Notes under the pieces: model-generated
What the model was told of the DNA's origin: nothing
The model's database searches: none
Seen by the model: the letters and a program-made list of their open reading frames with translations, nothing else
Translations under genes and position numbers: made by a program
Part shown: piece by piece, positions 4,009 through 53,076 of the stretch
Layout of the letters: the number at the start of each line of letters is the position of its first letter
How positions within the stretch are numbered: position 1 is the first letter of the stretch
Origin: Penicillus capitatus
Lineage: Eukaryota; Plantae; Chlorophyta
Assembly: GCA_965649825.1 (NCBI GenBank)
Contig: OZ287707.1
Location: 302,292-366,291 of the forward strand
Direction of reading: 5' to 3'
Length of the DNA stretch: 64,000 nucleotides

Positions 4009-6050
4009 CGTTCGTGACCTACGTAACGTGAAATCATCGTTTGCAGTTACACCAAACGAGCAGATTTACTCACCGGTTCACAAAACTCGAGGAAGGGAAA
4101 ACGAGTCGCGCACCTCGTTAATATTAAATGCAAATTCAGCCGGTTGATGTGACGCATCCTGCCAGGAACAATCTCATTATAGACACAGTCTTTTCGCTGA
4201 CAACAGAGGTTGCCATTGTCGCATTTGAGCACTGCACCCGCTACAGAACCCCTCAGAAAAATTTTTGTCAATATCGCAGCCAAAAACGAACATCTACTAC
4301 ATGGATGAGGTTACTGGTTTCAGCTTGTAAACTCAGATGACCGCAAGCCGTATTCTCTGGGAATTGTCATTATGGACTTGACTGAACTAATACGGAAGAA
4401 AGTCGTCCATGCAGCATGTTCGAAAACCATTAAACTTGAAGCTTGACTTCAACGAAAACAGACAACCTCGAAGGATGGATGAGCGATGATAAGGGATCAG
4501 CTCATCATCAGGAATTATTCAGTATGTCGTCACACGCATCCATAAAATCGTTCAAGTCCTGGTGTCGTTGCAGAACGCACGCAGAACAGCTTCGCCTTTG
4601 CATGTCTTGATCTTGTTCAGACATGACATATACTCTGTGGTTTCGAGGCTTGGTGGCATTGGACTGTCAACAAGCAAGACGTTGCAGAACCCGCTTAAGA
4701 AGCGTCGCACCTGGCCGAACAATCACCACTCTATCAGCATGTCAAGAAAATCGCACGTTCTTTTAAAACTCAAAAGAGAAACACCATGTCGACACCTTAT
4801 CGTGTTCCGTCTGCTTTTTTGTTCGAATGATTGTCTCATCGTTCCGACACGTTTCCCTGTGCATTACCGATTTTTGTCAGATCATCTCCATGCAAAACAA
4901 CTCTTCTGGCTTTACTTCTAACTGAAGCTCGAGAGACCCGGTGTAAACGGGGTGAGAAACCTCTAAAATGTCGAAGGTTCGTAACCACCGAGGCTCAAAG
5001 TTCCCTCCACGAAATCATTTCTGAACACCCTGTCGTCGAAGTGCAGTAACTATGCCACCATCTTCTTCGCTAAGAGTGCCGCCGACCAGATGGGCTTGTC
5101 ACGACGTGAGATATACCATAGCAGAATGTCTTTGATGCTGTCCACCTTGCTCATCTAAACAACATCTTCCGTTAAATTCGGCGTTCATCGATCCGCTTGT
5201 CGCGGGGAGAGTCGAATGACAAGACAGCTTCTTTGTTCGTGGTAGGTTTGGTCGTCAGCGTCGCCGTCGTACAACGTGTCCATCGCTTCGCTCCTTGCAC
5301 GTGCATTTCCTCTTTCATCCACGTGCATCGTTTCCATCGTTCTCTTTCGCCGCTTTCCACAAATGCATTCTCCTGTTCGCGTACCATTTGGCCTACGCAG
5401 CTACGCCACAGACTCGGAGAGTGGTTCATGGCCAGGTTCCGACCTCTCCAGCTTGCCCTCCGTCAGCGACGATGACTCACTCTGCGGAGAGTTTCACTGC
5501 GAGTCCGACTTGACGGGCTTCGACGGAGGATCTATCGATTCAGCCACAACACCCAAAACAACGACCGTCGTTCCTCAGCGCCACATAAAGACGGAGGTGC
5601 CCATTCAACCCTCCAAAGAAAGCTGGAGCGAAATAGACGAGCGCGCTCGTCGCCAAGAACAGGCGAGACCCCATGCGAAGGTGGCGGGCGAACCGCCAGC
5701 ACGACATCAAATACGTCACAGCAAAAATACCAACCATCACCGCAGCAGAAGAAATGACCCCAGGTAAGGGCATTGTCTTCACCAATCGACAACTCCATGA
5801 AGCGTGCCATCGAAAAGGACGCCCAGTAACTCCGACAAGAGTGAGAACTGGAGATCGAAGCCTTCTCCCAAACGACGCCAGGACAGAAGACGCTCTGATA
5901 AGAGGTTGGAGCTAACTCATATTCCGTGAAGATGATGAGAAGTGTGATGTAGACGGCCAAGAATGGATCCGCCTCTCAAAGGAGCAGTGGTGCGTCCTTA
6001 TACCTTACCATCGGGTCCCATCACTGTGTTGCGCCGCCCAACGAGCGATG
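2760..6050. repeat. Segmental duplication copy A (NACHT 5' part + spacer + NB-ARC-TPR 5' part); paralogous to ~21470-24752
   Basis: Colinear same-orientation match, e.g. 5340-5910 nearly identical to 24050-24630; 4000-4090 matches 22705-22800, including the intron; homology stops at ...CCCAACG(A/G)GCGAT (~6050 / ~24752). Confidence 0.92.
5200..6050 (+). pseudogene. Truncated, frameshifted 5' copy of the NB-ARC-TPR gene
   Basis: Same sequence as 23900-24750 (RSYATDSESGSWPGSDLSS...) but lacks single bases at ~5559 and ~5750 relative to the open copy, and ends before the P-loop. Confidence 0.75.
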
Positions 6051-9287: not shown

Positions 9288-10026
9288 TCACATACTAGCC
9301 ATGTATACAGGCATGTCGACGATCATATTCAACTCCGCGTTCGCAAACACGCGTTCAAAGACTTCGTAACGGAGACCATCCTTGACATCTGCTTCCGTCA
9401 AGATCTTGTGAACGAGTGTGTCCATGTCTTCATCTGAGAGACAAGTGCCGCAGAGCTGCCGCAGGACGATCTGCAAATCGTCCCCCGATACGATTCCTAG
9501 AGAAGGTAAGTGAACATCGGTTGAGCATAAGAGTGAGCGATTGGACCGTCGCCGTCCACATCGAACAGCCGAAAGATGGACAAGGTTTTGACTTCGTGCG
9601 ATGCTTTGGAGGAGAAAGGCGTCAGCAATCGACAGAACTCCATGAAATTCACACCATCAAACACCCGAACCTGCACGTCTGTTCCTCTCCTGTCCGAGGA
9701 GAGCGGTCCTCACACGATACGTTGTGCCAAAGGGTTGATGGAAAGCTCAGGGATGTTCATGAATTCGTCTGCCGTGATGTATCCCTTTCTGCCTCGATCC
9801 AAAGTGCGAAAGCGACGGTAGAGGGCACTGATTTCGTCGTGTGAATCTGCACACAGTCATCGACGGTAGTTGCCGTCGCTGTCGAAGCTAGGCAGATTAC
9901 AGACGCCGCCACAATAGGCGCGGACTTCTTCGACGTCGTTTTGCGTCAGTCCATAGCTCATGACCTGATATACGTGATCCGCCGTGGCCGCGTTCGAGCG
10001 GTGGTGGAGAGACGCACTTGGCCCAT
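9288..10026 (-). CDS. Calcineurin B-like EF-hand protein
   Basis: MGQ|VMSYGLTQNDVEEVRAYC...ALYRRFRTLDRGRK...ITADEFMNIPELSINPLAQR...IFRLFDVDGD...LRQLCGTCLSDEDMDTLVHKIL; EF-hand motifs and an N-terminal MG. Confidence 0.88.
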
Positions 10027-11439: not shown

Positions 11440-12093
11440 GGGACCATTCTGTTTCAAACGCCATCGTCGAATGCTGCATCTCAGTCGATGCCCTCCACCA
11501 AACATACCACCACACTTCTCGCGCCGCCTCTTCGCCATTCTCGTCAACTTTAACGTGGATCCCAATGCGCTCTACGAAGAGACTGTCTTTGTACGGCGTA
11601 AGCTTCAGAAAGCTGTGGAAGAGACCAAGTTCATAGGACAGCGAGCGCGTCTGGACGCTGCACACGAAGCTCAGGAAGACATGCCGTTTCAACTCTTTCG
11701 TCTAAAATACGAGGTGCTGAGCAAACGCAAACTCGATCGAGCGTTCTTGGCCTACGAGCAACTCGAACAACGTCTCATGCTGCCCAAACATGTTCCAAGG
11801 GTGGACACCGATGCTCACCACATCTCCCATCTCATCTAAAGTCCTTCTGATCGCAGGACCTCAGAGAGTTCTATTTAGAGAAGGGCCGGTTTGATAACGC
11901 GCACGTGCGTCAAGTCATGAACATGTTGACGAGCTGCTGCTCGGATTTCCAAGAGGTGGTGATGCAGACGTGGATGTGGCGGGAGCGGCTGCATCGAGAT
12001 ATCTCTATGAACAGACGTTTCTTGGAGAAGCATGGAATCGATGTAATGGATATCGAATGGAATGAGGTGTTGCATTGGGGATACACAGAATGA
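11440..12093 (+). CDS. Hypothetical protein (start uncertain)
   Basis: Two protein-like exons (LFAILVNFNVDPNALYEE...; DLREFYLEKGRFDNAHVRQ...WGYTE*) separated by a short GT-AG intron; family not recognised. Confidence 0.55.
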
Positions 12094-12388
12094 GAGCAAT
12101 CTCAAACGTCACCCATCCAGTCGGATCTAACAGAACGGAGGGAAACGCGCAAAGAAGGATGACACTGGGATCGTCCGTCGACACAGCCAAGCCGTACAAA
12201 ACCATCTCCTATCGCAGTTTCGCGGCAGCTTCGCCTTTTGGACGGACGCGATGCCAAGCGTTGGATTTTCAGACATGTTCACAGAGTGACGTTGAATGGT
12301 GACTGTAGTAAACATTTGAATGCGTCGGTGGGCGGGAGGGAGGACACAACAGAACGTTGAGATGCAGCAGTCCCATCATTTAGCAATG

Positions 12389-14755
12389 TTAGAGGATGTT
12401 CTGTTCTGTAATGAAACGTCGCACAGCTGTGGTGACGTCTTCTTTCTTCGTGAGCAAGGCAGCATCCAAAAACTGATGTGCTCTCAACGATGTTACGCGA
12501 TGTCTCTGAGCCACACGCAGCGCTGCAGACACACGCTGAGAAGGGAACCCGAGTGCGCACAGAGATGACCTTTGATCACTTTGCCATGTCGCAGAAGAGT
12601 GGTGCAGTACTGATCCATGGCATTCGATTCGTTCCATTTTGCATCGCGCACGGCACAACGGCCGAAAGCATCGAGTCCAAGTTCAAGATATATCCCGTGA
12701 GGGCTCACTCTCTCCAAGTGCTGAGCCACCTCGACGGTCTGTGCATCTTTGCATCCATTCAACAGCTGCTGTAACTGAACAGCCATACGGTCCGTCTGTC
12801 ATCCATGCCGTTCGACAGAATGCCCTGACCTGAAAGAACTTCTTCTGTCGGATGAGAACGTCTGTCCACACAACGTAGGCAGAAGGATCGAGGGAGAGCT
12901 TCTTGCGATCGACGCTTCGCATAAACTCCATGAGACACATCTCCAGATGATCCGGCTCGACGACGTCTTCGCTGAGGAGGAACTTAAAAACGTCTGCAAT
13001 GACTTCTTTGGATTTGAGCATGGGCGTCTGCAGCTTCAGTGCGGCTGGAGTGATCTTGTCAGCGTTGGGTGGATAGACGGTCTCAGAGCCGTCGTAGTGT
13101 AACATACTGAACACTTCACGCATCACATGGACGCTGTGGTGTTGACGGATGACAGAACGGAGAGTAGAGACCAGTAGATGACGTGGATGGGCTGTGGGTA
13201 TCCATGCCACACGACGACGGTTGAGGAATCCAATCAACGGAGCCGGTTCGGAATATGATGTGACCACTCCTTCCAGATCCAACTGAAGGGTCACATCAAA
13301 AGAGTGAGAGATGTACTGGAAGATGGACAGACTTGGAAGCGATAGATGTTGCCGTTGTCGTCGATAACGACATCCGGTTGAAAGAATCGCCAATCGCCGT
13401 TGAAAGATTTAATGTTTTGGAGTTTGGCTGGTGACGAAGGTGTGGCCTCGGATGGCACAGAAGATTCGCCTGAAGTACTGGGTCCATCTGTCACACGAAA
13501 CATCTCACCTGTTCACACACATCCTGGATCGGATAGACAGTGACTTGGAAGAAGGTACCGGAGACAGGAAGGGGACTGCCGATGGGCAGAGAACTCGGCG
13601 ATGCGAGATCGTATATGGCAACAACGGAGGAATTCGTGTGTTGCACCAACAGGACGTTGTCAACGGTGTTGAAATACAAAACATCGTTGCACATATCGTA
13701 CTCCCTCGCCAACATCATCGTATCCCTGCAACAGCCGTTCCACGAAGATCTGCACGGATTGGATGTCTTCTCACATAAAAATGAGATAGAATCTGAGACG
13801 ACTGTTTCTTCGATCGATGTGACAGAAGAACACGCGATTGTATAACCTGGAGCGCGACATCTCAGTTGATGCAGATGGATGGCTGATGACCTGAGGAGGA
13901 CAATGTCTCGGGAGCTGACGAAAACGGGTGGCGGTCGAGGACTCGCGTTCATGCTCATCACTGCATCGAGATCTTGACTCGCAGAAGATGGAAATGGGGC
14001 CAGTTCTGTGACTGGGAGTTTGATCATCTGTTTAATGGTGAACTGATATCCCGTCACTCTACTGCCGCTTTGGCCCGTTCCCATGAGTAAGACCCGTGTT
14101 GCATATGTATAGATATACCACCTACAACAATACATATTCAACGATCTACATGATGTGACAGGTCACACTTGATGGTATGCCGAATGCGTTCTGTCATCTT
14201 TAGACCCTCTCGTTTTTCGGACGTGAAATTGTAGAACTCAATGGCGGAATCCGTCACCATGATCAAATCATAATCCACAGATTCCACAAAGAAACATCCC
14301 AAGATGTCTCTCTTGCGATTTGAGCATCCCTAAACAGACATCACTCTTTCACAACTATCCTTTTGAAGACACAATAGAGTGACCTGGACAAAGAGATTCC
14401 CTGTGGCTCTGTCAACAAACTGAATGAGTTTGTTGGAACGGTGGATGGCTAGTGTCTTGCAATCGAGAGAGATCTGCACCGAGATGTACTGGTCGACACT
14501 GTCCACATGGACCTCCCAAGTCTTGCGATTGAGATGCGGATCAAATCCATCTTCTATATCACAAGAGTGACCCCCGACAGAAAAGAGTGACATAGAAAGC
14601 TGACCGGTTGGAAGGTCATAAGCTTCGATTCGGTCACGTCGAGGGACAAGAATGAGACGTGTCGCGTCGTCGAAGAAAAGTCGCTGCTCGGAATGGAAGC
14701 CGTCGATGTGTCCTTGACTGCACATACGCACACAGGCGACGGACGAGCTCGTCAT
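12389..14755 (-). CDS. RMC1: Regulator of MON1-CCZ1 complex (C18orf8/Mic1-like)
   Basis: N-terminal LFFDDATRLILVPR, beta-propeller-like middle, C-terminal Mic1 domain CLMEFMRSV...ALRVAQRH...AHQFLDAA...RRFITEQN*. Confidence 0.8.
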
Positions 14756-16895: not shown

Positions 16896-17773
16896 TCATG
16901 AATGCGATTGGAGATATTGAACGAGGGCATCAATAGTGATGATTTTTAGACCGTATTGACGGGCAAATTTAAAGAGCTGCGGTGTGCGAGCCATCGACCC
17001 GTCTAATCGATTGACGATCTCACACAGTACTCCTGCAGGACGACATCCGGCCAGCCGCGCCAAATCCACACTCGCTTCTGTATGGCCACGTCTTGTCAAC
17101 ACACCTCCATCCGAATACCTGTCGCATCATCATCGCATGACGGATAGCACAGCGAGGGCGTTGCCTGAGAGGGAAGATGTGACCGGGGCGTCTAAAATCG
17201 GATGCTTGACTGGTGGCATCTGCCAAGGCATTGAGCGTTTTGGCCCGATCCCCTGCCGATATCCCCGTCGTCGTGCCCTTTCGCAGATCGACCGTGACTG
17301 TAAAGGCCGTGCATTTGGCGTCGGTATTCTGCGAAGGCGGCACCATGAGTGGCAACTGTAGTCGATCCAGATCTTCTCCCTTCATTCCGACGCACACGAC
17401 GCCGCTCGTATTCTCCACCATGAACGCAATGCTCTCCGTTGTCACCAAATCTGCTGCGGCAACGAGATCTCCTTCGTTCTCTCGACTTTCGTCATCCAAC
17501 ACCACGACAAAGCGTCCGGCGGCGATTTCTTCGATGGCGGATTCGATGGTGTCAAAACGCAATTCGCTTGACCGTGGGCTCTCCAGTATGGACCCATGAC
17601 TTAATGCCTTATCGGAAATGAGCATAGGGGAGGCATGATCCAAACCGACCTCTGCTGTAAGAGAACCCAAAGGAGACCTCCCGTTTGGCGACACCGATGC
17701 CGTTTCCCGATCACACGTCAGCTCACTGGCATTCGGTGATGTGACGTGTGCCTTGGCTACTCTTGTTGCCCAT
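16896..17773 (-). CDS. ribB: 3,4-dihydroxy-2-butanone-4-phosphate synthase (stand-alone RibB domain)
   Basis: [70 protein letters not shown]; stop follows directly after the domain. Start codon approximate. Confidence 0.92.
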
Positions 17774-18323
17774 GCTTTCCTGACCTTCAGTTAAGATCTT
17801 GCGAGTTAAGGCACTGCAAAGCATGTGTACGTACAGAGCTTCGTGTTGAGGGTCGTGGACACGAGACATGCACACGTCCCACAAAGATGCCGTTTGTGCT
17901 CGTCATGACTGATACGCCGTGTGTTGGTATGTGCGTCTACAACAAAGCCTCGCTCGACGACAACCACACGGTCAACACTCAAACCAAGAATTCGCTTCGG
18001 AAATAAAGAATGAAGATTTCAAACGTCGAACGGCGATGCGCACCGAATATCGTATGGCGTCCGTCACAAAGAAATGATGAGAGTGTACGGCATCGCCATC
18101 GACGGACGGGTTCGATCACTCACCGCTCGACATCGATTGTCTGCGGGGCAGAACCCGTTCGATGCTGCGTTTGAGTAATAGAACAACAAAGAGTAACGAA
18201 AAGAGTGAGAAAAGAAAGCCGAAGCAACAGACGAGTAGGCCGATGTTGAGGACGGACGGTAAATGCTCGCTGTCTTCGCTTCGATAGCGCATCCAGCTCT
18301 CGTGCGGAACCTGTCGTAGTGAT

Positions 18324-18745
18324 CGCTTCCGTCTGAAAAGGCCACGTCGTTTCATATTCCTTCGTCGTTTCGCGATACCTACCGGCTGAAACACAGCGGA
18401 CAGGGACGTGCGCAGCGCATGGGCGTCTGGGGTGGGGATATGGCGTCGAGCATGGATGACGTCGTAGGCGCCGCTTCGAAGAGAGAGTTATGACGTATGC
18501 GATAGGTCAGATGCATTGGCAACGGTCCGAAAAGCCGCATTCAAAGTCTGTCGTACAAGGCATATGCGTCGCTCTTTGTTGTGCCGTCGGGGGGTTTCTC
18601 GCGGACCTCTACTTCTGCGAAGGAGACGACGCATTGTGTGTCGTCATGTGGTGATGCACCGAAGAGAGGGACTGTCATCGCGGTCTTATCGTTCGGGAGA
18701 CGGTCGACCGAAGACGACTGTCGAAAAGGTGTTCAGCAGCACATC
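18324..18745 (+). repeat. Duplicated fragment of the upstream region and 5' CDS of the gene at 33286 (matches ~33066-33468)
   Basis: Direct sequence match from CGCTTCCGTCTGAAAAGGCCACGTCG to CAGCAC(A/G)TCGACTGTGA. Confidence 0.9.
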
Positions 18746-19385
18746 GACTGTGAAAACTGCGAGTGTTGTTGCATACCCAAACGTTAGTAAACGAGCTCAT
18801 TATTAGAAGCTACGGCTTAACACGACACCGATATTTGGACGCACGCACGTTGAGAAAGAAGCTATGCGAAACATAGCAACCTCCATTACTGTCTCGTTGT
18901 CGATGAACGAACACACACATCAACGAAAAACCTTAAAACAGAATGGTGACCTAAACAACGCAATTATTCCCCTTTCATAGTGTTAGAGGCTCTGATGTGA
19001 CATGTAGTAGGTTTTGATGTGGCTGTTTGTTCCCTTATACAGTCGGGCATGCCTTCATTACGTTCATTTTGTCTGACGCTTACTCACTATCGATTTGGTT
19101 TATACAGGATCGCCACCGTCTTGACAGAGAACATGCCAGGTACACTCGACAAAGCCCAATCTGCGCGCAAGACTGCTTCAATGGTCACCTATCTTCTTGA
19201 CCTCTTCCGAGAAGCCTTTGATCAACTCCCCGTATCGCGGTCGACCTTCTGCTTCGCATCGTCTGGTTTCTTGAAACTCACCATCTGTTCTTCTCGAGCC
19301 CGCGTGCTCCGAAGATTATATCGGCGATTAACCTCTCGCACTCTTGTTAGTTCATCTTCGTAAGACCAGCTCGGCCTACAGCGGC

Positions 19386-19608
19386 GGCGTCGCTCAACCA
19401 CAGACTGGGAAACACGGCGAGGCAGAGGAGCTCTACACCAAGAGCCTCACTCTTCGGGAGAAGTACCTGGGCCATCGCAACACCGAAGTCGCTTCCAGTC
19501 TGATCAGTCTGGCGGCCGTCAAGGTCCTGCTGAGTCACTACGAGGATGCGCGAGGCCTCTACAGTCGAGCCCTGACGATGTTAAAAGACATCATCGGCGA
19601 AGATCACC
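19386..19608 (+). pseudogene. Isolated TPR-exon fragment copied from the NB-ARC-TPR gene (26741-26964)
   Basis: Near-identical DNA encoding HGEAEELYTKSLTLREKYLGHRNTEVASSLISLAAVKVLLSHYEDARGLY; a 1-nt deletion near its start. Confidence 0.9.
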
Positions 19609-19799
19609 GATCTGCGAGTCCTTTTAAACCCTGTTGTATAGAGAGACTGATTATAACAAACGTCCACATGGACGATTAATCTCACTCTTCTTGCCTGTAA
19701 TGCATCGACGCGGGGCGTCTCACAGACCACGACATTTCTAAATAAATGTATTACATTACGTTACATTAAGATGTGCAGAACAAGCATGACATGACAACA

Positions 19800-20329
19800 A
19801 ACAAACGGTTGTAATGCGTGACAGATTACAACCGTTTTTTGTCGTCAGTACATCGACGGTTGTCGGAAACGTACAACCGCAACACATGTACACCACGCGC
19901 TGTACATCGGCGCAATACTGTCGCGGAAGTGCGACGGATAAGTGGAGCGCCGCGACATGACAGTATTGCGCGTCGCGTACATCGGCACAATACCATCGTG
20001 GCATCGCGCCAGAACGCGCAGATACCATTATGGCTAGTATTTTGGGTTTTGTTTGTTTGTTTTCTTTGTTAAAAAGAAAACAAACCAAAAAGATCCTTTA
20101 TACACTGATACCATGCAACCAGTAACAATGACACAAGCAAGAGCACAGCTGGGGGCGGCCAACTTCGACTGGGGGATGATCGGGCCGGTGCTGGCCAGGA
20201 TGGTGGAACACGTGGGGAGGATTAACGGGGATGTTCGCAGGCATGGTTTGGGGATTCCGCCGGTGAATGGAAGGGGTCAATTAAGACTCGGGGTTTACAT
20301 GTCAGTTTGCGATTTTTATGCGATCGGCA
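19800..20329 (+). other. Hairpin-palindrome-ORF cassette copy 1 (ORF 20113-20328, truncated)
   Basis: Hairpin units (GTACATCGGCGCAATACTGTCGCG), palindrome CAT(20026)...ATG(20113), ORF MQPVTMTQARAQLGAANFDWGMIGPV...DFYAIG, then an abrupt switch to a copy of the NB-ARC-TPR 3' flank. Confidence 0.85.
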
Positions 20330-20762
20330 CCCCACCCTGCGCTTTGTCAGCCAGCTCGCTGTGTGATCTAGGTCCTACGTCACACATTCACACTGGATGA
20401 TGATCTGTTTTAAACGACACACTTGCTGCCCGAGCAGTACGATGCTGTCCAAAAGATGATCATTAAAAACTAATAATTGTCAAAATTTTGTGTGACAAAA
20501 TTATATCCATTTGTAAAATAATTCATCAATTGTAAAAATAGATTTCGGTCGAGAGCAGTACACTTCCGTCACGACGCGTCCGACGCGACAGTACTGCACC
20601 GTCACGTACATCGGCGCAATACTGTCGCAGCACAGCGCGTCGTGACGGAATATGCGCGTCGCGTCGCACTGCTGCGACAATACTGCATCTAGCCAATACA
20701 CAACTACAGTGGTATTGGCGCGTTCTGATACGCTGCTGCGGTGACAGTACCACCGCGGCAGC
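20329..20762 (+). repeat. Copy of the NB-ARC-TPR 3' flank plus hairpin array (matches ~27793-28280)
   Basis: Shared CTAGGTCCTACGTCACACATTCACACTGGA and AGCAGTACGATGCTGTCCA, and the same hairpin units through CCGCGGCAGCGCG. Confidence 0.9.
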
Positions 20763-20798
20763 GCGCGTTTTCGCAACTTAATCAACCAAACCACGACG

Positions 20799-21415
20799 TT
20801 ACACATTTGGATCGAATAAGTCATACAACGAATCCACAAAGTGTATTGCCGAGGATCGTCCGAAGGCCCGAATGTCCCCTCGCCTTCTCACTGTCGTACA
20901 CAAGAGGTGAAATTCCCGCACATATTTATCCCTCTGGACCGCATTTCCTTGCCGCATAACCCCATGGTGAATTAACCGCCTACGTGTACGGTTCATTATG
21001 ACACGCCACGTAACCACCCCCGCGCGGTTGCCGACCGACAAAAAAATCCCGAACCGAAAGATACACCCAATTCCTCAATTCATCCCTTCCACGCACCGGC
21101 GCGATCGCCGATCCACGTCTGCGAACCGCCCCGTTAAGCCATCCCGTGTACACCACCATCTTCTCTACCACCGGCTTGATCAGCCCCCAGTCGAAGTGTG
21201 TCGCCCCAAGGTGTGCTCTTGCTTGTGCAAGTGTTACTGGCTCCATTGCAACGGTCTATAACAGATCTTTTTTGTTTGCTTGCTTTTTTACAAAGAAAAC
21301 AAACATAAAGAAGCTTTAATATACCGTCACGATGGTATTTGCACGTTCTGGCGCGCTTTCACGATGGTATTGCGACGCAGTACGTTACGGCGCAATACTG
21401 TCGTCGTCGCGAGCG
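20799..21415 (-). other. Hairpin-palindrome-ORF cassette copy 2 (ORF 21246-20799, one-base frameshift in a T7 run at ~21040-21046)
   Basis: MEPVTLAQARAHLGATHFDWGLIKPVV...; removing one T restores DFLSVGNRAGVVTWRVIMNR...FVDSLYDL; palindrome 21244-21334; hairpin unit 21365-21402. Confidence 0.85.
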
Positions 21416-21429
21416 GTTCGACTCTGAGT

Positions 21430-22713
21430 GTTATTAACGTTGTTATACGATTCGCGACAATTCCCCATCATGCGGATCTCGTGTGCAACATCGAGGAGAG
21501 CAATGAGAAGATCCGAATCGTAGTTCCAGCTTTCAAGGAGAGTAGTGTTCGTCGCCGGATCTACCAGCTTCATTGTCGCCACTTCATGGACATCTTTACA
21601 TGACCCTTGTATTCCTAGCATCTTTATTTCTTGGATGGTGCTGCATCTCAAAGCCTTTTGCTCCTCTCAATGCTTTTTTCTCTTTGCACTTCCATTACTA
21701 TCTCTTATGTATCAATGAAAGTTTTTATTTTTGTTGCTAATTTGAGAACAAGAAGCTTTGCTGCGATCAAGGTTCGGAGCACTTCGTACCATTGCTTCTC
21801 TAATACTCCAAAATCAGCGATGGCATCTCGGCATTTCGTATATGCGTTTTCTAACGCCATGGGATTGATATCAACGCGTTCCGCGTCTCTATGAAGATGC
21901 AAGATATGTACTCCGCCGTAAAGTGTGGACAGGACGTGTCTTCCTGAACGTGCGATGCTTGACGGAGCATCTTTAGTTTCCAGGCGTTCAGCAGCCTGCT
22001 GTATGAGCTCGAAATAAAACCGGACTGGGTAATGCTGTACAGGTGACTTCATTTCTGCTTTCTCCTGCACTACGCCCCACCGAAGTTGTTCCTTTTTATC
22101 CTCGAACAATCTGTACCGGCCAATGACATGCAAAAGAAAGAAGAGCTGGTGGATTGCGAGGAAGCCTGCTTCATACTGGGAAAAGTTCTGTTTAGTGAGT
22201 CAGCGCTTGGAAGATAGAGCTGACCTAAGGTTCGTGGCTAGATCTATTAATCGGACAGGGTCTTCATAAACGGAAGATTCATCCCCTGTGAGTGAACTGA
22301 AAAGAACCTTCGCAATGTTCTCGTGGAGTAACTCTCCTCTGCATTCGCGCAAACGGCAATGAATGGCACCAACAAAATCCGTAAGTAGAGCTTACCTTGG
22401 TCACGGCAAGGAACTATTTTTGCCAGCTCTGCATACCCGAGAACCGTTTCCGATATCGAACATTCCTTATTTCGCGTGTCATACTGACGCAGCCGTGGGA
22501 GGAGAACATCTCGTTCAGACTCGTCCGTCGTGGCGTTGTAGCATCGACCAGCGACTTGGCACACTATTCCGTTCCTTAGAAACGACACTCAGGAGCTTCG
22601 GGTCATTCAGTTCTTTGTCGTCCGAGTTGGGCGGGGGAATGGCGACTGAGAACTTCACATTCGGACGGTTCTCCTATGGACGATTCTTCGTCCACAACAT
22701 GAACCTGCATCAT
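21430..22713 (-). pseudogene. Pseudogene of the Arm-NACHT gene (N-terminal exon only)
   Basis: Three ORF pieces in different frames match the 528-aa exon (YNATTDESERDVLLPRLRQY; QHYPVRFYFELIQQAAERLETKDAPS; ESWNYDSDLLIALLDVAHEI); no NACHT domain follows. Confidence 0.9.
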
Positions 22714-23814
22714 CGTGCGTGACCTGCGTAACGTGGAATCGTCTCTTGTCGTTACAACGAACGAGAGATTCACTCACCGGTTCACAAAGCTCACGGAAGA
22801 GAAGACGAGTCGATCAACTCGTTAGCATTAAATGTAAGTGTCGGTCGTTGATGTGATGCATCCTGCCAGGAGAATGCTCATTCAGGTTAATGCTTTCTCG
22901 ATAACGAAAGAGACTGTCTCGCGCTGAGCACCCTGCTCTCTGGAGTGACTCTTAGACCAGATTTGTGCCGACATCGCAGACACAAACGAACATCTAGTAC
23001 ACGGATGAGGTCACTGGGTTGAGATTATGAACGCAAATGACCACAGACCGTATTCCCTGATATCTTCCATTACAGACTTGACTGGACCGATACGAGAGAA
23101 AGCCGTAAATGTAGCGTGTTCGAAAACCAATTGGACTTGGAGATGTGCTTCGGCGAGAAGAGAAACCCCTTAAGGACGGGTGAGAGATGATCAAGGATCA
23201 GCTCATCAGGAGTCATCTAGCATGTCGTCATACACACATCGGTAAAACCATTGGAGGAAGTGCTAGTATCGCCGTCGAACGCACGTCAAGTTCATCTTGG
23301 CAATGCCTTATTGTATTCAGAACATGAAGGATCTCCGCGTTTCCGAGGCTTGGCGGCATCGGACTGACAAAGCATAAGACGTTGCAGCATCCGCGGAAGA
23401 AGCGTCTCACTTGGCGGAACAAACATCATTCGATCTTTGTGCCAAGAAAACCGCACGTTCTTTATCAAGAGTCAAAGAGAAAGATTCTGTCAACACCTTA
23501 TCGCGTTCCGTCAGCTTTTGTTCTAATGATTGTCCCATAGCTCTGACACGTTTCCCTGGGCATTATCGATGGCTATCAGATCATCTCGATACGCAACAAC
23601 TCTTCTTGCTTTACTTCCAACTGAAGCTCGAGAGACACGACAGTGACGGGATAAGAAACCTCTAAACAGTTAAAGGTCCGTGACCATCGAGGTTCAAGAT
23701 TTCCCTCACCGAGATCATACATCTTAGAACACTGGCGCCGAGGTTTAGTAACTGTGCCATCATCTTCTTTGCCGCTGCCTAGAAGGCGTTTCACGACGGT
23801 CCTTTAAAAACTGC

Positions 23815-26800
23815 ATGGGGGATATATACCGCAGCAGAATGCCTTCGACGAAATCACCTTCCCCATCTGAGTACCATATGTTAATTTCGGCGTTCACCGT
23901 TCCGCTTGTCGCGGGGAGTCGAATGCGAAGGCACCTTCGTCGTTCGTGGCAGGTTTGGTCGTCGGCGTCGGCGTCGTACAACGCGTCCATCGCTTCGCTC
24001 ACTGCACGTGCATTTCCTCCTGCATCCACGTGCATCGTTTCCATCGTTCTCTTTCGCCGCTTTCCACAAATGCATTCTCCTGTTCGCGTATCCTTTGGCC
24101 TACGCAGCTACGCCACAGACTCGGAGAGTGGTTCATGGCCAGGTTCCGACCTCTCCAGCTTGCCCTCCGTCAGCGACGATGACTCACTCTGCGGAGAGTT
24201 TCACTGCGAGTCCGACTTGACGGGCTTCGACGGAGGATCTATCGATTCAGCCACAACACCCAAAACAAACGACCGTCGTTCCTCAGCGCCACATAAAGAC
24301 GGAGGTGCCCATTCAACCCTCCAAAGAAAGCTGGAGCGAAATAGACGAGCGCGCTCGTCGCCAAGAACAGGCGAGACCCCATGCGAAGGTGGCGGGCGAA
24401 CCGACAGCACGACATCAAATACGTCACAGCAAAAATACCAACCATCACCGCAGCAGAATGAAATGACCCCAGGTAAGGGCATTGCCTTGACCAACCGACA
24501 GCTCCATGAAGCGTGCCATCCAAAAGGACGCCCAGCAACGCCGACAAGAGTGAGAACTGGAGATCAAAGCCTTCTCCTGAACGACGCCAGGACAGAAGAC
24601 GCTCTGATAAGAGGTTGGAGCTAACTCATGTTCCGTGAAGGTGACGAGAAGTGTGATGTAGACGCCCGAGAATGGATCCGCCCCTCAAAGGAGCAGTGGT
24701 ACATCCCTTACCATCGTGTCCCATCACCATATTGCACCGCCCAACGGGCGATCCGTGACGAATCCGGCGTTCCGACAGACGGTGCAGAAATGGTGGGACG
24801 AGAAGAGGAAGTGGGCACGATCTCTTCCTTGATCGAATCCGGTCGACATGTTGTCATGATCACCGGCCTTCCTGGTATTGGAAAGACAACGGTCGCTGCA
24901 ACCGTCGCAGATGAGTTGCTCAGGAGCCAGATTCTGCAGAACATTCGCTATCTCAATCTCTCCAACGTGACCGAGCTCTCCGACGCTGTCTTCAGAATCG
25001 GAGCAGCTCTGAAACATCCGATCTACCAGAGTGCCCTGAGCAGCGGTAAATCTGTCCTTCTCCGTCTCATCCCTTACTCATTTCTGCAGGCGGATGGCAG
25101 AGGATCGATTGAAAAACTGGTTAAAACGACACGGAAATACCCATGCGCCGACGGGTTGGGTTCTGGATGGACTGGATCATCTGTTCTTGGATTCCCATGA
25201 ACGGCAAGGGCTGTTCGATATTCTGATGGAGATTTTGGAATTCTTTCCCCGGTTGCACATCATCATGGTCTGTTCGGAGGCTCCGAATCCTTCAGAAATG
25301 CCCTTCGTCGACGAAGTGATTCGGATCGGCCCTTTGCCGGAACAGGCTGCCTATCAATTCGCAGAGAGCCTTCTGGGCGGCGCGCTTTCGAAAGGGGAAG
25401 CTCGCCACTTAGTATCCGCCACGGCAGGATTCCCACTCGGCATCAAGATCGGCGGAAGCAGTATCTTGGCCGGCGGCTGCTCCGCCTCTCACTTGGAACA
25501 GCGTCTGGATCAGGTGAGGGACGGGGATAGCGTCGAAATGCGAGCTCCTTGGAATCGGGCACACGATATGATTCGAGAAGGCATCTCAGCTTTGTCGCCA
25601 GAAGATCGACGTGGACTCATTCTCCTCTGTCAATGTCCTGATGCCTTTACTGTGGAACATGCAGCAGCTGTACTGGGTCAGTTACGCAAACCGACACAGA
25701 CCTGGTCATTGCTGAGACGGCTAATGATGAGAGGCTTCGTTCGATACATGCTCACCGAAGGCAACCTCCCTGCGTCCACTGCACTGTCTTCTGACGCGTG
25801 TCTTTCTCTGCAGGGACCTATCGGTTAGAGGAGGCCGTTCTGGATGTGCTGACACATTGCACGGCCATTCGAGATCGTGTCTCGAGAGAAGGCGAGTACG
25901 AGGCCGTGTCGAGAAATCTGGAGATCGATGAAGATCAGAGGGATGGAGCACGGGCGGGATTGGTGGTCTACTATCTTCGATTGCTGGATCGAGCGCTGAT
26001 GGTCTTCCGTTCGGGTTCCCGTCTCTCAACATACCGTCTGCTCGAACAGGAGCGCGACGGTCTCGAACGGTTCGTTCGGTACATAACGGAACCATCTGTC
26101 CGGCGAAAACTGCTGTCGACGGGATCCAAAGGAAAACTGCTGAAGCTGCTCAAGATCCTGAGCGATTTCGTCGTGGATGTGGGAAAGCACTACTTCACCT
26201 GGAACCAGGTACGCAACATCTGTGCTTCCATCGGATGGCTGTGGGAAGAAGACATGACGCCGATCTACGACGAGGTGTCCTACAAGGTCCGCTTGGCGCT
26301 GGCCAATGCCTTGGCCTGCATCGGAGAGCGACGAGACGCCGAGATCATTCTGACCCAACTGGAGACGTACATCGACGGCCTGAACACGTGTACGGAGCGA
26401 GATCTCAAGGCGAAGGCGGATGTCCTGGTCCTCAAAGCCAAGATTCAGCATCTCGCTGGTCGCTACCCCGAAGCCGAGCGCTACTTTAATCAGGCGCTGA
26501 ATGCCCAGGAGAGTGCTTACGGGCGCGATCACTTCACCGTTAGTCGTACGTACTCACTTCTGGCCACGGTCCAGCAGGTAGATACTGCTGACTCGTGGGC
26601 GAGATCGATGCGTTGTGTTTGTCTGTGCAGATTCTGCAGAAATTCGGCGACGCAGAGCATTCGTATAAATGCAGTTTGAAGATCCGAATGAAACACACCG
26701 GCAAGAACGTCGTCGAAGTGCCAACGGTCATGCATAACTGGGCGTCGCTCAACCACAGACTAGGAAAACACAGCGAGGCAGAGGAGCTCTACAACAAGAG

Positions 26801-27787
26801 TCTCATTCTTCGGGAGAGATACCTGGGCCATCGCAACACCGAAGTCGCATCCAGTCTGATCAGTCTGGCCGCTGTCAAGGTCCTGCTGAGTCACTACGAG
26901 GATGCACGAGGCCTTTACAGTCGAGCCCTGACGATGTTAAAAGACATCATCGGCGAAGATCACCAGGCCGTGGCCTACACATCGACAAGACTGGGGGTGT
27001 TGCTAGAGACGCAGAAATGCTATGACGAAGCGATCCAGCACTTCGCAGAGGCACTGGTCATCGACGATCGAGTGTACGGAGAGAGACACGAACAGGTTCA
27101 GAGGTCTATCGGCAGAATCCAGAGGGCGGCGCTGAAGCACGCGCAGACACTGCACACGTCTAAGCAACTCGTTCGATGGAAGGCGTACATCGAAGAGCTT
27201 CTGAAGAAGTACCGTTTCAAGTGGCCGGAACGGACGGGTCCGGACAGCAGGACCGGATTTGCTGTCGATACGTCTGCAGATCTGTTGGCGGCTCAGCAGT
27301 CCATCCAGTGGCCATTGATCCGGAGGCTTCTGGTCCGTCTGAAATCAAGACGGAGACAACGACGTCGTTCCAGGGATTCGCACCGGCAGTCAAGGACCAC
27401 ACAGGCGTCGATTTGGACAGCACGCTCCATCTGAATAGCTCGGCCTTGCAACTGAATGTGGACTCGGCTAGCAGAGGTCCACCTGGATTGCCCAGAACGG
27501 CAGGTGCGTATTCTGCCGATCCCCCGTCCCAAGAAGCTTCGGGTATGAAGAGATACTCTTCGACCGACATCCCCAAGGCGTCGTCTTCGATCATGGGATC
27601 ATCTCAGAACAGCGAGCTGAATTTCGGTCAGTACTCGAGTCAGCCGGAGGGGAATCAGACCATCGCTCACGCCTATTCACTCGTGCACGATAACTCTCAG
27701 TTCGGCGTGGCCAACACTAGCTCTCTGGAGACGACCATCTCTCCCAGAGCCAATCAAGACATCACCTATCCGATCCCTGCCTCGTAA
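23815..27787 (+). CDS. NLR-like NB-ARC (AP-ATPase)-TPR protein with disordered N- and C-termini (start uncertain)
   Basis: Walker A ITGLPGIGKTT (24865-24888), Walker B WVLDGLD, GxP motif AGFPLGIK, winged-helix region, kinesin-light-chain-type TPRs (AERYFNQAL...YGRDHFTVSRTY; AEELYNKSL...HRNTEVASSL). Inferred introns 24473-24640, 25046-25100, 25761-25813 (GC-AG), 26578-26630, 27221-27279. Confidence 0.85.
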
Positions 27788-27989
27788 GACGTCCCACCCC
27801 GCGCCCTGTCTGCCAGCTCATTGTCTGGTCTAGGTCCTACGTCACATTCACACTGGAGGACGATCTGTTAGAAACGACACACTTGATGCCAGAGCAGTAC
27901 GATGCTGTCCAGAGCATGCATAATTCAAAATTAATAATTGTCAGACAATTGTGTGACAACAAACCATTTGTAACATTTTCTGCTAAAAA

Positions 27990-28299
27990 TAGATTTCCAG
28001 TACACTTCCGTCACGACGCGACCGACGCGACAGTACTGCGCCGTCACGTACATCGGCGCAATACTGTCGCGTCGGACGAGCTGCGGATCCGTCGCGCTGC
28101 CGCGACAGTATTGCGCCGTCACGTACATCGGCGCAATACCGGCGCGGCAGCGCATCGTGACGGAATAGGCGCGTCGCGTCGCACTGCTGCGACAGTACTG
28201 CCACTAGCCAATACACAACTACAGTGGTATTGGCGCGTTCTGATACGCTGCTGCGGTGACAGTACTACCGCGGCAGCGCGGCAGAACGCGCCAATACCA
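27990..28299. repeat. Array of GC-rich inverted repeats (hairpins)
   Basis: 28022-28075: 22-bp stem, one mismatch, loop TCACGTACAT. 28094-28153: same unit nested in GCGCTGCCGCG/CGCGGCAGCGC. 28225-28299: perfect 18-bp stem TGGTATTGGCGCGTTCTG/CAGAACGCGCCAATACCA with an inner stem. Confidence 0.93.
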
Positions 28300-28388
28300 T
28301 CGTACCAGTGTATAAAAGATCTTTTTTGTTTGTTTTCCTCGTTAAAAAGAAAACAAACGAAGAAGATACTTTCTACACCAATACAATG
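28298..28388. promoter_or_regulatory. 91-bp AT-rich imperfect palindrome bounded by outward-facing ATGs, containing TATAAAA (putative bidirectional promoter)
   Basis: Left arm CATCGTACCAGTGTATAAAAGATCTTTTTTGTTTGTTTTC mirrors right arm GAAAACAAACGAAGAAGATACTTTCTACACCAATACAATG; length conserved at 90-91 bp in all three copies. Promoter role is inference. Confidence 0.6.
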
Positions 28389-28820
28389 CAGCCAGTAACT
28401 CTGACAGAAGCAAGAGCACAGCTGGGGGCGGCCAACTTCGACTGGGGGCTGATCGGGCCGGTAGTGAACAAGATGGTGGAATACACTGTGCAGCTGAACA
28501 CGTGGGCTGAACATTGTGGTCCGCAAATTCCGCCGATTCTGGGGAGGGAGCAGCTGAGGGAAGCAGTGGGTTTCGTGATTGGCGACTTTGTTGCGATCGG
28601 CAACCACGCTGGGTTTGTTACGTGGCGTGCTGTAATGAACCGTGTACGTGGGCGGTTAATTTTTCATGGAGTTATGCAGCAAGGGAATGCGGGCCAGAGG
28701 AATAGACTTCTGTGGGCATTTTACCTTTTATTTAGGACGGTGAGAACGCAAGGGGACATTGGGACCTTAGGAGTAACCGCGGCAGTAACGTTTGTGGATG
28801 CGTTGTATGGATTGGATTAG
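28386..28820 (+). CDS. Uncharacterised intronless 144-aa protein (cassette copy 3, intact)
   Basis: MQPVTLTEARAQLGAANFDWGLIGPVV...FVDALYGLD*; two diverged paralogs in the window keep the amino-acid pattern, which supports coding status. Confidence 0.8.
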   Translation: MQPVTLTEARAQLGAANFDWGLIGPVVNKMVEYTVQLNTWAEHCGPQIPPILGREQLREAVGFVIGDFVAIGNHAGFVTWRAVMNRVRGRLIFHGVMQQGNAGQRNRLLWAFYLLFRTVRTQGDIGTLGVTAAVTFVDALYGLD

Positions 28821-29149
28821 CTCCAATTGTGTAAGGTCGCGGTTTGGTTGTTCAAGTTGCGAGAAACGCGCGCTATCGCGTCAACAAGAAAACGCCCACC
28901 GCGCCGACGCTGAACGCGCACGGACTGCTTCCTCGGAGTTAAATAACGTAACGCTTGGTGTGACGTGCTGTCATAGAGAGAGCCGCTCGCAGTGAGAAGC
29001 AGGTTTTCGTGTGGACAAGATACACAAATGCTTTCGACGAGAACCTGCACGTCCAGCGCCGTGATGTTGAACTAAAGAATATGCGTCCCGCATACCCACT
29101 TATCAAGCAATCGGAGAAACGAGATGGGAAACCTGGTCATAAATTCTTC

Positions 29150-30500
29150 TGCAAAGCTCACCAATCCATCCGGCAGAGTGGCTTCTGTTGAATGTCCATG
29201 ACGAACAGGAACTTCTTTCGGCCATCCAACTCACAAAGTCCACCAGTCAGAGCCAGGATGATAAAACGGATGCAAATCTGAATATGGCGTACTTCCCTTA
29301 TGAACGAGACGGGCGAAAGGCAAATTCACTTTCTCATCGATTCGTGGCAACCGTTGTTCTGATATTCCACATTTGCAGAAGGGAGCTTTGGATGACATCA
29401 TTGTAATTGTGGTCCGTAGCTGTCGCGGCTTAGCAGCTCCGCCGTGTAGAGGCGCCGAAACGCGCAAGACGACAAACGCGTATCGTTACAGAGACTGTTT
29501 TTGACATCCACGGAAAGGAGTTTGTGCGGCGGAGAACGGACACACACGTCACGTCTTCGCCTCTCATGGTGTCACGCTCTCGCGTGAACGTTGCACCATC
29601 TGCTTCGTTCTGTCTTTCAAGAGGCGCTTGGACAAGCTTTGTGTCTTCTCAAGGGCGTCTTTCTCTGGTTCTGAGTGCCGAATGGCTCACTTGGCCTGTG
29701 AAGTCGTGTCACATCAGCACTGTAGAAGGGGGAATGTTTGCTTTATCTGCGATCTCGGTTTTAGGGTCTTTCTGCGTATGCGTTCGTTTGTTCACCGACA
29801 GCGCGACAATACCGGAGTCGTTAACCGGCCAGGTTGAGGGGCAAACGTAAGCAGACGACCTAGCGATTTGGAAGGAGTAAAATGCAGGGGGCAAAGACAC
29901 AGTGGACGTCCAAGTGACCCTCGAGAAAGTGCGAAGCCTTGGCCGTCAGCTTGGAGATGCCATTCGGCTCAGTCAAGACGAAAACGATCTTCATCTCCCG
30001 CCTTCTATAGCAAACCGGCCCGCAGCTCCGACTCCGCAACACGAGGCTGATGGCAGCGCGGTCGACTACTCCATTTCGGCATCCAAATCGATCGACGTCT
30101 CCTCCGGCGCGAACACGTGCACTTGATTCGGGCGCCGACACTCCACCGACTCGTGCAGATGAAGATGATTGCGTCCACATACAAAAGCCGGTGCTAAGAC
30201 GGCTGGTCAGGGCGGCTGTTCTCCCAATCCTAACGTATGCGATTGAAGCACGGGGCTTTCGACTCTGAGAGTCAAGTCTGTCCACTTGACGCTCGACCGG
30301 ATCAGCCGACTGTGCTCTCAGTTGCAGATTAGACGCACGAACCGCCATGGGCAACCACCGCGACTGTTGCGCGACTCGATTACCATCCAGGCGCCTCCGA
30401 ACCATGGAGAGCGACGGACGAAGGAAGGCCCTCGTCGCAACTGCCTCGTAACAGCAGGGATACGATTGCCAAGTGCATAGACAAGTGCGCAGCTGTTGGA
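29150..30500 (+). mobile_element. Decayed non-LTR retrotransposon (LINE) reverse transcriptase
   Basis: RT-like motifs in the expected order: ELLSAIQLTK (~29210), IRGNRCSD (~29340), VFDIHGKEF (~29497), ISVLGSF (~29750), *ADDLAIW (YADD with TAC>TAA at 29848), LVRAAVLPILTYAIE (~30205-30250). Confidence 0.62.
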
Positions 30501-51103: not shown

Positions 51104-52712
51104 AACTGTAGCGATTTAGCCCAGTGATGGAAGACGATATGATGAACATATCTGTCGTGGCCTAGAGTTGACGTATGACAATCGTGATACTATGATGGGC
51201 GTTCAATGAGCATCGAAGACAGATTTGGATCCTGAGTTACTTCATTCGAGCTACCGACTTTGTCCATTGATTTTATGGTAGTATGAGCTCTAACCCTCAA
51301 GTGCTCGTACATCAAGCAGATTCATTTTCTAGGCGAAATCGCGACCGACGAGGCTATGCTCAGGTGCGACTATTGCTAATCAAAACTATATCCAATGCTC
51401 CGACACGTTCTTCGGAACGCAGTGTGTTTCTGAGAAAGTGTAACATTAGTTTCACATCAGTGTCACATCAGATGAGTCATCCTGTCTCGGACAGCGGTCC
51501 GAAAGCAAAGTGGAAGTTCACGTCGTCGTGATAAACCTTCCACCATGGAGCGTGTCTTGCGGCCGGCGGCAACGGTCCTCTCCTGCGGCTGGCGACGTCA
51601 GAAATTCGGCTAGCTGTGAACAAACAGATTAGCCGCCAGGAAAGTGAGGTTTGTGGATGCTGTGCTTCGATATTTGTCTTCCCCTTTTTCCAAAATACGT
51701 TTGACAATGATCTTCACATTCGAAATCAAATTGCAAAAATCGTGTCATGTCCGCGTCACGTGGACGCCAAGCACGCGCGGCGACGGACGGAGGAAACGGA
51801 CGAGGAGTTAACCCAAGACTGCATGTGAGCACTTGCAATAGTCTATTACCCGATGGGACCCGCGGCCTCACGTCACGTCGCAAAACTGTGACGTGTCCGA
51901 TCCGCGGTCCGAAAACCGTCTCGACCCTCCCATCACCAATAAAAGATGTACGTGTGGATATCAAATTCTGTAGAGGATAAAAAAGGCAACGAAGAAGAGT
52001 GGCTAAGGCGGTACCTTCAAGAGTGTTGTGTCCCAATGACACAATGTTTGTGCAGTTTCGGAGGCATGCACGGAGAAAAGTTTCGCCTCGAATGGCACGC
52101 TGTCTCTCGGCTTTCGTCATCGCTTTCTCAAAGCATCGTTTTCCCGAACACACAACCCATGATGCATTTTCGGACTTACCGTGAGACATAAGACCTATCG
52201 CGGCCAGGTTATGGCACAAGGAGCTTGCTGTCTTCTCACCGACTTTCCGCTTTTGAAGGATGCATCCCGACAAGTCTGTGACCACGGGCACAATGTGGCC
52301 GAAGAGGCGTCTTTGCTCGTCCGAAGGTAGACAACGCAGCCATTGTCAGTGAACAGCTGTCCACCTTCGTGCAGCTGCCACGGATGCGCGTTGATGTGAC
52401 ATACGTTTACGTCTGACGCGTATAAATTCTAAACTCGTGAATGTTACAACAGTCTTTGTTAAACGATACGCCTTCGTCGTTAGCGCGTGTCAGCGATAAC
52501 ACGACACCATCTAGAAACAAATGGACCCTATGTAGATTGACGAGCATCAAAGAAAGAATGAAAGAAGGCTTACGTCGGATATAGCCACAGCATCTCTGCC
52601 GCACCAATATGAACTCCAGGATCGGAGCAATGCACTCGAGCTCCAGATCCGAACACGACAATGACACCACGATGCAATAGACCGATTCTGCAAACTCCAT
52701 GACAACGTTCTT

Positions 52713-52784
52713 GCCCTCGTGGTGTAATGGTTGGCACACTTGAGGTTTTCTCAAGAGGCTTGGGTTCGAGTCCCGCCGAGGCGC
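52713..52784 (+). tRNA. Pseudo-tRNA forming the SINE head (nominal anticodon TTT; not a functional tRNA-Lys)
   Basis: 72-nt cloverleaf with D-stem GTGT/GCAC and anticodon stem CTTGA/TCAAG; loop GGTTTTC lacks U33 and purine-37; acceptor and T stems mismatched. Confidence 0.6.
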
Positions 52785-53076
52785 CCCGTGAGTCACTCGG
52801 GTGATAGTGACTGGCCGGAGGGTGAAGCGGCGACTCATCATGATCAAGAAAATCGGAAGATTGTGCAATTAAAAGACGTGGGTCAAGTCCAGACCGGAGC
52901 ATGCGGTTGGACGTGAGGTGGACGACGAATCGTCGCAGACGCTGTGAGACATGTGAAGCGACGGATGGAAGCACGAGTCATCTAACTGAACGATTGAACG
53001 ATGAATTGACAATGGGCGTCGGGTTGCTAATATGCTAATTAAGCGTATGCAGCTGTAAAAATCCAAATCGAATCGA
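52713..53076 (+). mobile_element. tRNA-derived SINE (~365 bp) with target-site duplication
   Basis: tRNA-like head with intact A box (TGGTGTAATGG) and B box (GGTTCGAGTCC); 3' tail AATCC-AAATCG-AATCG; flanking direct repeat ATGACAACGTTCTTGC at 52699-52714 and 53077-53092. Confidence 0.82.

Follow-up and report, generated by a model that had tools for sequence, protein, structure and literature searches.

Template switching creates and perfects hairpins, and it mimics compensatory change without selection (PMC8794818; PMC10710096). In such template-switch quasi-palindromes, imperfect repeats are perfected or lengthened in single arm-copying events. The locus described here, one G+C-rich hairpin array and one AT-rich quasi-palindrome in front of a small open reading frame (ORF), is similar; changes of this kind appear in palindromes D, F and L1b and in the hairpin stems C1 and C2 (the letters denote the copies of the locus, which are introduced below). 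Different from the described cases, the events are inferred from paralogues on one contig with no dated phylogeny, and the element is putatively promoter-proximal, with even the first codons of the gene overwritten. A second related system is ODIRA (PMC10766183; PMC11790251), in which short inverted repeats are the junctions of inverted duplications. The convergent pairs A/B, L1a/L1b and D-E/F of our locus have similar junctions; these are located in or at palindromes and show microhomology. Unlike in ODIRA, the amplification is old and decayed (dS ∼0.4), many simple fusions are present instead of the triplication pattern, and no origin was identified. The likeness to inverted-repeat-mediated amplification is a resemblance and not a demonstration.

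Compact bidirectional or TATA core promoters are also similar to the locus; like them, it has a short A+T-rich element at the ATG, TATA-like boxes in both directions, and arms made of T- and A-tracts. Different from these promoters, no gene is located on the other side of the element, and the other genes of the host that we compared do not have it. Foldback elements carry sub-repeats that are arranged in inverted orientation. Like foldback elements and MITEs, the locus contains a small A+T-rich element, terminal inverted repeats and arrays of inverted sub-repeats; unlike them, it is undispersed in the 131 kb of contig analysed, it is always linked to the same ORF, and it has neither a consistent target-site duplication nor an autonomous partner. 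With hairpin-RNA and miRNA-precursor loci, it shares stems of 18–25 bp, loops of 10–13 nt and the presence of several hairpins in succession, whereas strand consistency, covariation, targets and Rfam matches at threshold were all missing here. An earlier note on this DNA also suggested an RNA antitoxin-like partner for the small protein. Type I toxin–antitoxin systems consist of one bacterial small toxic peptide and one overlapping antisense RNA; in our case the host is a eukaryote, the protein is 144 residues in length and predicted to be all-helical, and the putative RNA would not overlap the ORF; the comparison fails. The hairpin plasmids of Cladophorales are single-stranded DNA molecules of the plastid (bioRxiv 10.1101/145037); we set them aside as an analogue, since the present locus is nuclear and chromosomal.

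The small gene family and the layout of its copies

The 64,000-nt stretch of DNA analysed here (the window) is eukaryotic nuclear DNA with few long ORFs; it contains NACHT and TPR genes, one condensin Cnd3 gene and one tRNA-Lys. The tRNA-Lys(TTT) gene, located at about 52712–52786, is the sole feature of the window to pass an Rfam gathering score. For two long ORFs (2425–4008 on the minus strand, 528 aa; 60159–61745 on the plus strand, 529 aa), no Pfam domain scored meaningfully. Paralogous loci were taken from 131 kb of one 894,450-bp contig of the ENA metagenome assembly ERZ25074695, in which the window corresponds to ∼765.5–829.5 kb. The best named match of a CLC channel encoded on the same contig is from Bryopsis sp. 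KO-2023 (61%), followed by chlorophyte and land-plant CLC-d proteins; the host is therefore a green alga close to the siphonous Bryopsidales.

In the 131 kb of this single nuclear contig, we found 10 copies of the ORF family and 11 arrays. All 11 arrays and all eight palindromes are located within 0.5 kb of an ORF-family copy, and the family as a whole spans ∼220 kb with its ∼10 copies. Copies C (in the window), G (P0005) and L1a (P0002) are intact; the other seven (A, B, D, E, F, L1b and L2) are broken by truncation, frameshift or fusion. As the earlier note described, the order of the elements is array, AT-rich palindrome and small ORF, which is evident on reading 27400–29200 and 19300–22200. 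The features of the C locus, followed by those of copies A, X and B, are:

27793–27997, plus strand: 3′ tail and UTR of the upstream NACHT-TPR gene; stop codon at 27785–27787, UGUAA at 27969, duplicate at 20331–20555
27998–28297, unstranded: array C, G+C-rich nested inverted repeats, 37% A+T, defined by folding and stem mapping
28298–28388, plus strand: AT-rich quasi-palindrome C, putative core promoter; TATAAAAG at 28311–28318 (−75), core GTTTGTTTTC...GAAAACAAAC, ATG at 28386
28386–28820, plus strand: intact 144-aa orphan ORF, copy C; UGUAA at 28830, 10 nt past the stop codon
19880–20025, unstranded: array A, one half-unit, one hairpin unit and the proximal module
20026–20115, plus strand: palindrome A with hybrid arms, the left of F type and the right of C/D type; TATAAAGG on the bottom strand
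20113–20330, plus strand: ORF copy A, truncated 5′ fragment fused to the duplicated NACHT-TPR 3′ tail
20556–20765, unstranded: array X, 93–97% copy of array C minus one 75-nt unit, without palindrome
20766–21246, minus strand: ORF copy B and its 3′ flank; pseudogene with in-frame stops and a frameshift
21244–21334, minus strand: palindrome B
21335–21410, unstranded: array B, one hairpin unit and the proximal module

One perfect 13-bp hairpin (19803–19837, AAACGGTTGTAAT..ATTACAACCGTTT and then T5), which contains UGUAA in the stem, is located ahead of array A, after the fragment of the upstream TPR gene. A near-identical counterpart precedes array F, at ∼689.2 kb of the contig (ERZ25074695 numbering).

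The 144-aa ORF has no Pfam domain and no PDB relative. Among 5.8 billion proteins and 1.84 billion cluster representatives, its homologues are found on the same contig only. The AlphaFold model of the ORF product is all-helical and of low confidence (pLDDT 54). Between the intact copies dS is ∼0.4 and dN/dS is 0.6–0.7; judged from this ratio, the ORF is under weak constraint. Copies C, F and A are each located just downstream of a NACHT-TPR gene or its 3′ tail, and remnants of this arrangement are present at X and L1b. The surrounding NLR-like cluster includes NACHT/AAA_16 plus TPR genes at 54–6049, 21460–24752 and 23815–27787 of the window and at 13691–16979 of L040; the segments 2760–6049 and 21460–24752 are duplicates with ∼80% identity. 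The orphan ORF repeatedly lies just 3′ of a NACHT/AAA_16 plus TPR gene and in the same orientation. We also considered that the small ORF might be akin to the N-terminus of the adjacent NACHT-TPR protein, in the style of fungal NLR/effector pairs; this was rejected, as BLASTP detected no similarity (E = 3.9). The small gene is lineage-specific, and it is locally amplified within one NACHT-TPR (NLR-like) cluster of a green alga.

Duplications of different ages are present around the family. Downstream of the ORF, one apparently non-coding segment of ∼1 kb (28831–29808) is 92.5% identical to L001 10598–11584 and 92% identical to L002 10072–10810, whereas the ORF itself is just 76% identical to the L001 copy. 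The mosaic suggests either recent gene conversion or separate duplication histories. Elsewhere in the window, 17000–18591 shares 98% identity with L002 12818–14405, which is the last 1.6 kb of the 894-kb contig and carries a DHBP-synthase gene. This segment is a recent segmental duplication, and it is probably the reason why the assembly stopped at the contig end.

The AT-rich quasi-palindrome as a putative core promoter

The three palindromes of the window were confirmed at the positions first given for them: 20026–20115 (90 nt, 71% A+T), 21244–21334 (91 nt, 68%) and 28298–28388 (91 nt, 69%). Their A+T content of 68–71% is to be compared to 50% for the window. Imperfect palindromy is well beyond chance, with 64–68 matched positions among 89–98 aligned; the self-alignment scores are 25–45, whereas shuffled sequences average −4 to −6 and reach at most 12–18. 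Conservation of length, which the earlier note had emphasized, holds for the three window copies (90–91 nt) and relaxes to 83–93 nt once five further copies of the same contig are added. The outward-facing ATGs are real; every palindrome of the window (n = 3) starts with CAT and finishes with ATG. The small ORF starts at the right-hand ATG or, in copy B, at the left-hand one. No conserved frame follows from the mirror ATG, where the reading frames of C, B and A have 11, 31 and 90 codons, respectively; this ATG is therefore just the mirror image of the start codon within the palindrome. The core pair GTTTGTTTTCTTT / AAAGAAAACAAAC of the palindrome occurs only at ORF copies in the 131 kb of the contig.

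In chlorophyte mRNAs, ulvophyte ones included, UGUAA is located ∼17 nt ahead of the cleavage site (PMC1868727). On the plus strand of the C locus, UGUAA is present at 27969, downstream of the NACHT-TPR stop codon and 29 nt before the array, and again at 28830; owing to these two signals, the small ORF looks like a transcription unit of its own. Since nothing else lies between the upstream 3′ end and the ATG, the promoter of the ORF must be located in the array and palindrome. From its position and motifs, we infer that the AT-rich palindrome is the core promoter. It abuts the ATG in all eight copies that retain the start codon, and these copies are all on one contig and related by duplication, hence non-independent. 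TATAAAAG is located at −75 on the left outer arm in two of the three intact copies (C and G) and also in D, and TATA-like boxes are likewise present in B and L1b. Mirror TATA-like boxes on the bottom strand of the right arm are found in A (TATAAAGG), D (TATAAGAG), L1b (TATTTAAAG) and B. As expected of a bidirectional core promoter, promoter-type motifs occur in both orientations and at suitable distance from the gene.

In the proposed arrangement, TATA-like boxes ∼60 bp apart on the outer arms would flank the T-rich and A-rich arms. Initiation would then be expected near the palindrome centre, and the ORF mRNA would carry the right arm alone, as a leader of ∼40 nt. Counter to the promoter reading, the intact copy L1a has no good upstream TATA. 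The upstream regions of eight other genes of this genome are ∼50% A+T and contain no comparable element, so a palindrome as promoter would be atypical for the host. An invertible promoter was also considered, as TATAAAAG seemed to lie distally in C but proximally, and on the other strand, in A; this idea was rejected. Aligned in forward or in reverse-complement orientation, the palindromes have nearly the same scores (43 and 40, respectively, for C versus A), which makes their orientation irresolvable; the hybrid-arm pattern described below explains the placement of TATAAAAG in C and A better than an invertible promoter.

The hairpin array and the proposed leftward RNA

The arrays are hairpin-forming inverted repeats of 60% G+C, located directly upstream of the palindrome and built from the 12-mer GGCGCAATACTG in alternating orientation. 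Array C contains the run of stems that was reported before; it has two hairpins (28019–28078 and 28094–28153), each made of a 25-bp stem that includes 2 mismatches and of the 10-nt loop TCACGTACAT, and one outer stem encloses both. These are followed by one small hairpin (28203–28238) and one 79-nt proximal hairpin (∼28222–28300). The repeated unit, stated to occur about six times in the window, is present as five complete hairpins and one half-unit, and the 11-mer CGGCGCAATAC (≤1 mismatch) has 11 matches in the window versus 0.72 expected. The 75-nt periodicity escaped Tandem Repeats Finder, because the arrays of the window have only two units each; one separate repeat search did recover it. 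An ORF that spans the array was discarded as spurious, without homologue. Both strands of the G+C-rich side form much more stable folds than their shuffled versions; the folding energies of 27990–28300 are −186.8 kcal/mol (z = −14.2) for the plus strand and −198.4 kcal/mol (z = −12.3) for the minus strand. Most likely, the array would be an upstream element or binding-site array, or a mere palindromic minisatellite.

The earlier note proposed that the palindrome points to a protein gene in one direction and to a structured RNA in the other. On such a model, one TATA-like box on the bottom strand would drive a leftward multi-hairpin transcript, which would give rise to small RNAs or a regulatory RNA. 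In agreement with this, the TATA-like boxes face inward on both arms (A, D and L1b have the bottom-strand sequences given above), the stems are 18–25 bp in length with folding z of about −12 to −14, and template switching seeds new miRNA hairpins (PMC10710096). C, X, A and B have more G·U and a lower energy on the opposite strand than on the ORF strand; for C, A and B the opposite strand is favoured by 2–16 kcal/mol, and this is the direction of the proposed RNA. G·U versus C·A asymmetry discriminates RNA-level from DNA-level pairing. However, the G·U bias is toward the opposite strand only in C, X, A and B, toward the ORF strand in F and G, and neutral in D, L1a and L2; the pooled counts, 36 versus 48, are not significantly different. 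The loops conflict as well. Judged relative to the ORF, with the inter-hairpin spacers in constant orientation, C, X, A, B, E and L2 share the loop CACGTACAT, and F and L1a/L1b have the complementary ATGTACGTG. With both loop orientations and conflicting G·U bias, the copies do not show the consistent transcribed strand of a structured RNA.

Compensatory changes among the copies, to which the earlier note had looked, did not appear; the pairs of the 13–15 bp core stem are invariant, and the extended stems are accounted for by DNA-level symmetrisation. For the eight palindromes, RNAalifold retained a consensus of only the central 10 bp with 1 covarying pair, and the symmetry of the arms is copy-specific. 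Array content and unit number vary freely among copies. In the Rfam search, the hairpins stayed below gathering, with generic miRNA-precursor matches of 20–34 bits on both strands; the gathering thresholds of the miRNA families are 36.5–110 bits, and 52–110 bits for the matches on the array hairpins and palindromes themselves. In the 131 kb, NACHT-TPR genes included, array 21-mers (≤3 mismatches) match other arrays only, and miRNA-like targeting of the neighbouring genes was dropped. The minus strand has no UGUAA in 27000–29000 and none for at least 1.3 kb leftward, so a leftward transcript would go antisense into the NACHT-TPR gene. Taken together, we found no support for a multi-hairpin RNA in these sequences, and we regard a bidirectional promoter with a structured RNA partner as unlikely. 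For the divergent palindrome as first proposed, the protein-gene direction is reasonable, given the abutted ATGs, the TATA-like boxes and the UGUAA spacing, whereas the structured-RNA direction was unsupported in every test run. Also improbable, and more so, is the larger idea of one bidirectional promoter and hairpin or small-RNA source that would be coupled to the orphan gene and co-amplified with the NACHT-TPR genes, or of palindromes that would act as built-in recombination sites to shuffle or invert the immune-type cluster.

Arm copying, rearrangement junctions and rival explanations

The pattern among paralogues shows arm-to-arm copying of DNA, by which the palindromes appear to be maintained and lengthened. 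Through intrastrand template switching or gene conversion, such copying would create palindromy, perfect it and extend it. Copy D is a near-perfect palindrome of 107 nt with 40 Watson-Crick pairs and 0–2 G·U. Its right arm GCCACGAATGGTATCTG is a mirror copy of the left one and stands in place of ATACCATGCAACCAG of A, C and G; with this arm rewriting, the first codons changed from MQPVT to MVSVT. Among the eight right arms, the best partner of the left arm in D, F and L1b is its own right arm, and the three arm sequences differ from each other. A and L1a are hybrids, with the left arm of F type and the right arm of C/D type. In the array, the stems of hairpins C1 and C2 were lengthened to 25 bp by mirror copies of spacers that are non-complementary in F and L2. 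The mark of a template switch, one arm that is an exact reverse-complement copy of the other and replaces the ancestral sequence kept by paralogues, is present.

Homology breakpoints also lie in the palindromes and arrays, and their symmetry would make them the places at which the cluster was remodelled by inversion, fusion and deletion. At 20765, array X meets the inverted 3′ flank of copy B, with GCGCGC microhomology. Copy E has a hairpin fused directly to codon 2, and in L002 the fusion is between an array and the middle of the ORF. L001 contains two inverted arms of 550 nt (9403–9952 and 12083–12632), which are 96% complementary and bracket two convergent ORF copies. Each arm holds one tRNA-Thr(TGT) (9432–9503 and 12532–12603, respectively), one array and one palindrome. 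The arms are near-identical from the tRNA to the left edge of the palindrome; within the palindrome they part in divergence, and the inverted repeat ends inside it. The ORFs between the arms are only ∼65% identical.

Besides RNA, the earlier note had offered DNA-level signals such as an origin or transposon ends. DNA-level signals do fit better than RNA, although not in these two specific forms. If the locus were the relic of a mobile element, the palindrome would be a miniature inverted-repeat insertion before the ATG, and/or the arrays would be foldback terminal repeats, and the copies would have spread by transposition. The A+T-rich palindrome of ∼90 nt with its terminal inverted repeats, and the foldback-like arrays of inverted sub-repeats, are what such an origin would leave; direct repeats of 8–9 nt also flank the palindrome in A (GATACCAT; 20018–20033 / 20105–20115) and in C (CAATAC(C/A)AT, CAATACNAT; 28291–28300 / 28377–28386). 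However, the flanking repeat is the recurrent array motif ATACCAT, and direct repeats were seen in A and C only. Of the other copies, D, F, L1b, G and L1a have the repeat in inverted form or not at all, with inverted flanks in D, F and L1b. MITE and foldback families have many dispersed, gene-independent copies, whereas no palindrome or array was found away from an ORF copy in the 131 kb; a MITE family independent of the ORF, which the earlier note had named as a way for its proposal to fail, is not what the ORF-linked arrays of this region represent. No transposase is present, and the copies sit inside larger segmental duplications with variable ends. The ORF family is absent from the rest of 5.8 billion proteins and, together with the array, from JGI and IMG/VR DNA, chance 17-mers aside; the 35 JGI metagenome hits and the 1 IMG/VR hit of the 17-mer GTACATCGGCGCAATAC were discarded as further copies, being single chance matches without hairpin. 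A mobile-element relic is quite unlikely.

The symmetry might alternatively act in the 5′ UTR. Transcription would start upstream of the palindrome, and the mRNA fold would sequester the AUG and throttle a possibly harmful small protein. The AUG does lie within the right arm in every copy, the folding energies of the ORF strand are −22 to −47 kcal/mol, and the ORF strand has the more stable fold of the two in A and B; in C, D, F and G this order is reversed. Moreover, the TATA box is inside the left arm, therefore initiation is expected within the palindrome, and no structure is conserved in register past the central 10 bp; a UTR hairpin is very unlikely. A replication signal, either an origin or the relic of a hairpin-ended or rolling-hairpin replicon with T-shaped double hairpins and flip and flop loops, would agree with the outer stem around two hairpins in C, with the two loop orientations and with the 3.2-kb structure of L001 with its 550-nt inverted ends. 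However, the T shape is confined to C and X, and the tRNA-Thr gene within those inverted ends is an ordinary one. Genes for a replication initiator, a capsid or other viral or plasmid functions are absent from the neighbourhood, and the copies are located within one nuclear chromosome segment of uniform composition; this explanation is extremely improbable.

We therefore prefer a joint reading, to which we give a probability of about 0.5. The palindrome would be the core promoter of the small gene, the array would be an element that acts as double-stranded DNA, the symmetry of both would come from arm-to-arm copying, and no structured RNA would be needed. For structure-based RNA prediction, the locus is a caution; strong folding z-scores and apparent compensation are present here without sign of RNA-level selection. 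Hairpin small RNAs, if found, would make the locus considerably more interesting; if one bidirectional promoter and small-RNA source were true, it would be an algal counterpart of the land-plant small-RNA loci that police NLR clusters. The orphan small gene, which recurs 3′ of NACHT-TPR genes in this siphonous-alga-like genome, may merit more attention than the hairpins. Under the joint reading, the locus is a natural example of gene-adjacent palindromes that appear to be made, perfected and extended by arm copying, in copy D to the point of overwriting the first codons, and it shows palindromic sites turning into breakpoints that remodel a duplicated gene cluster.
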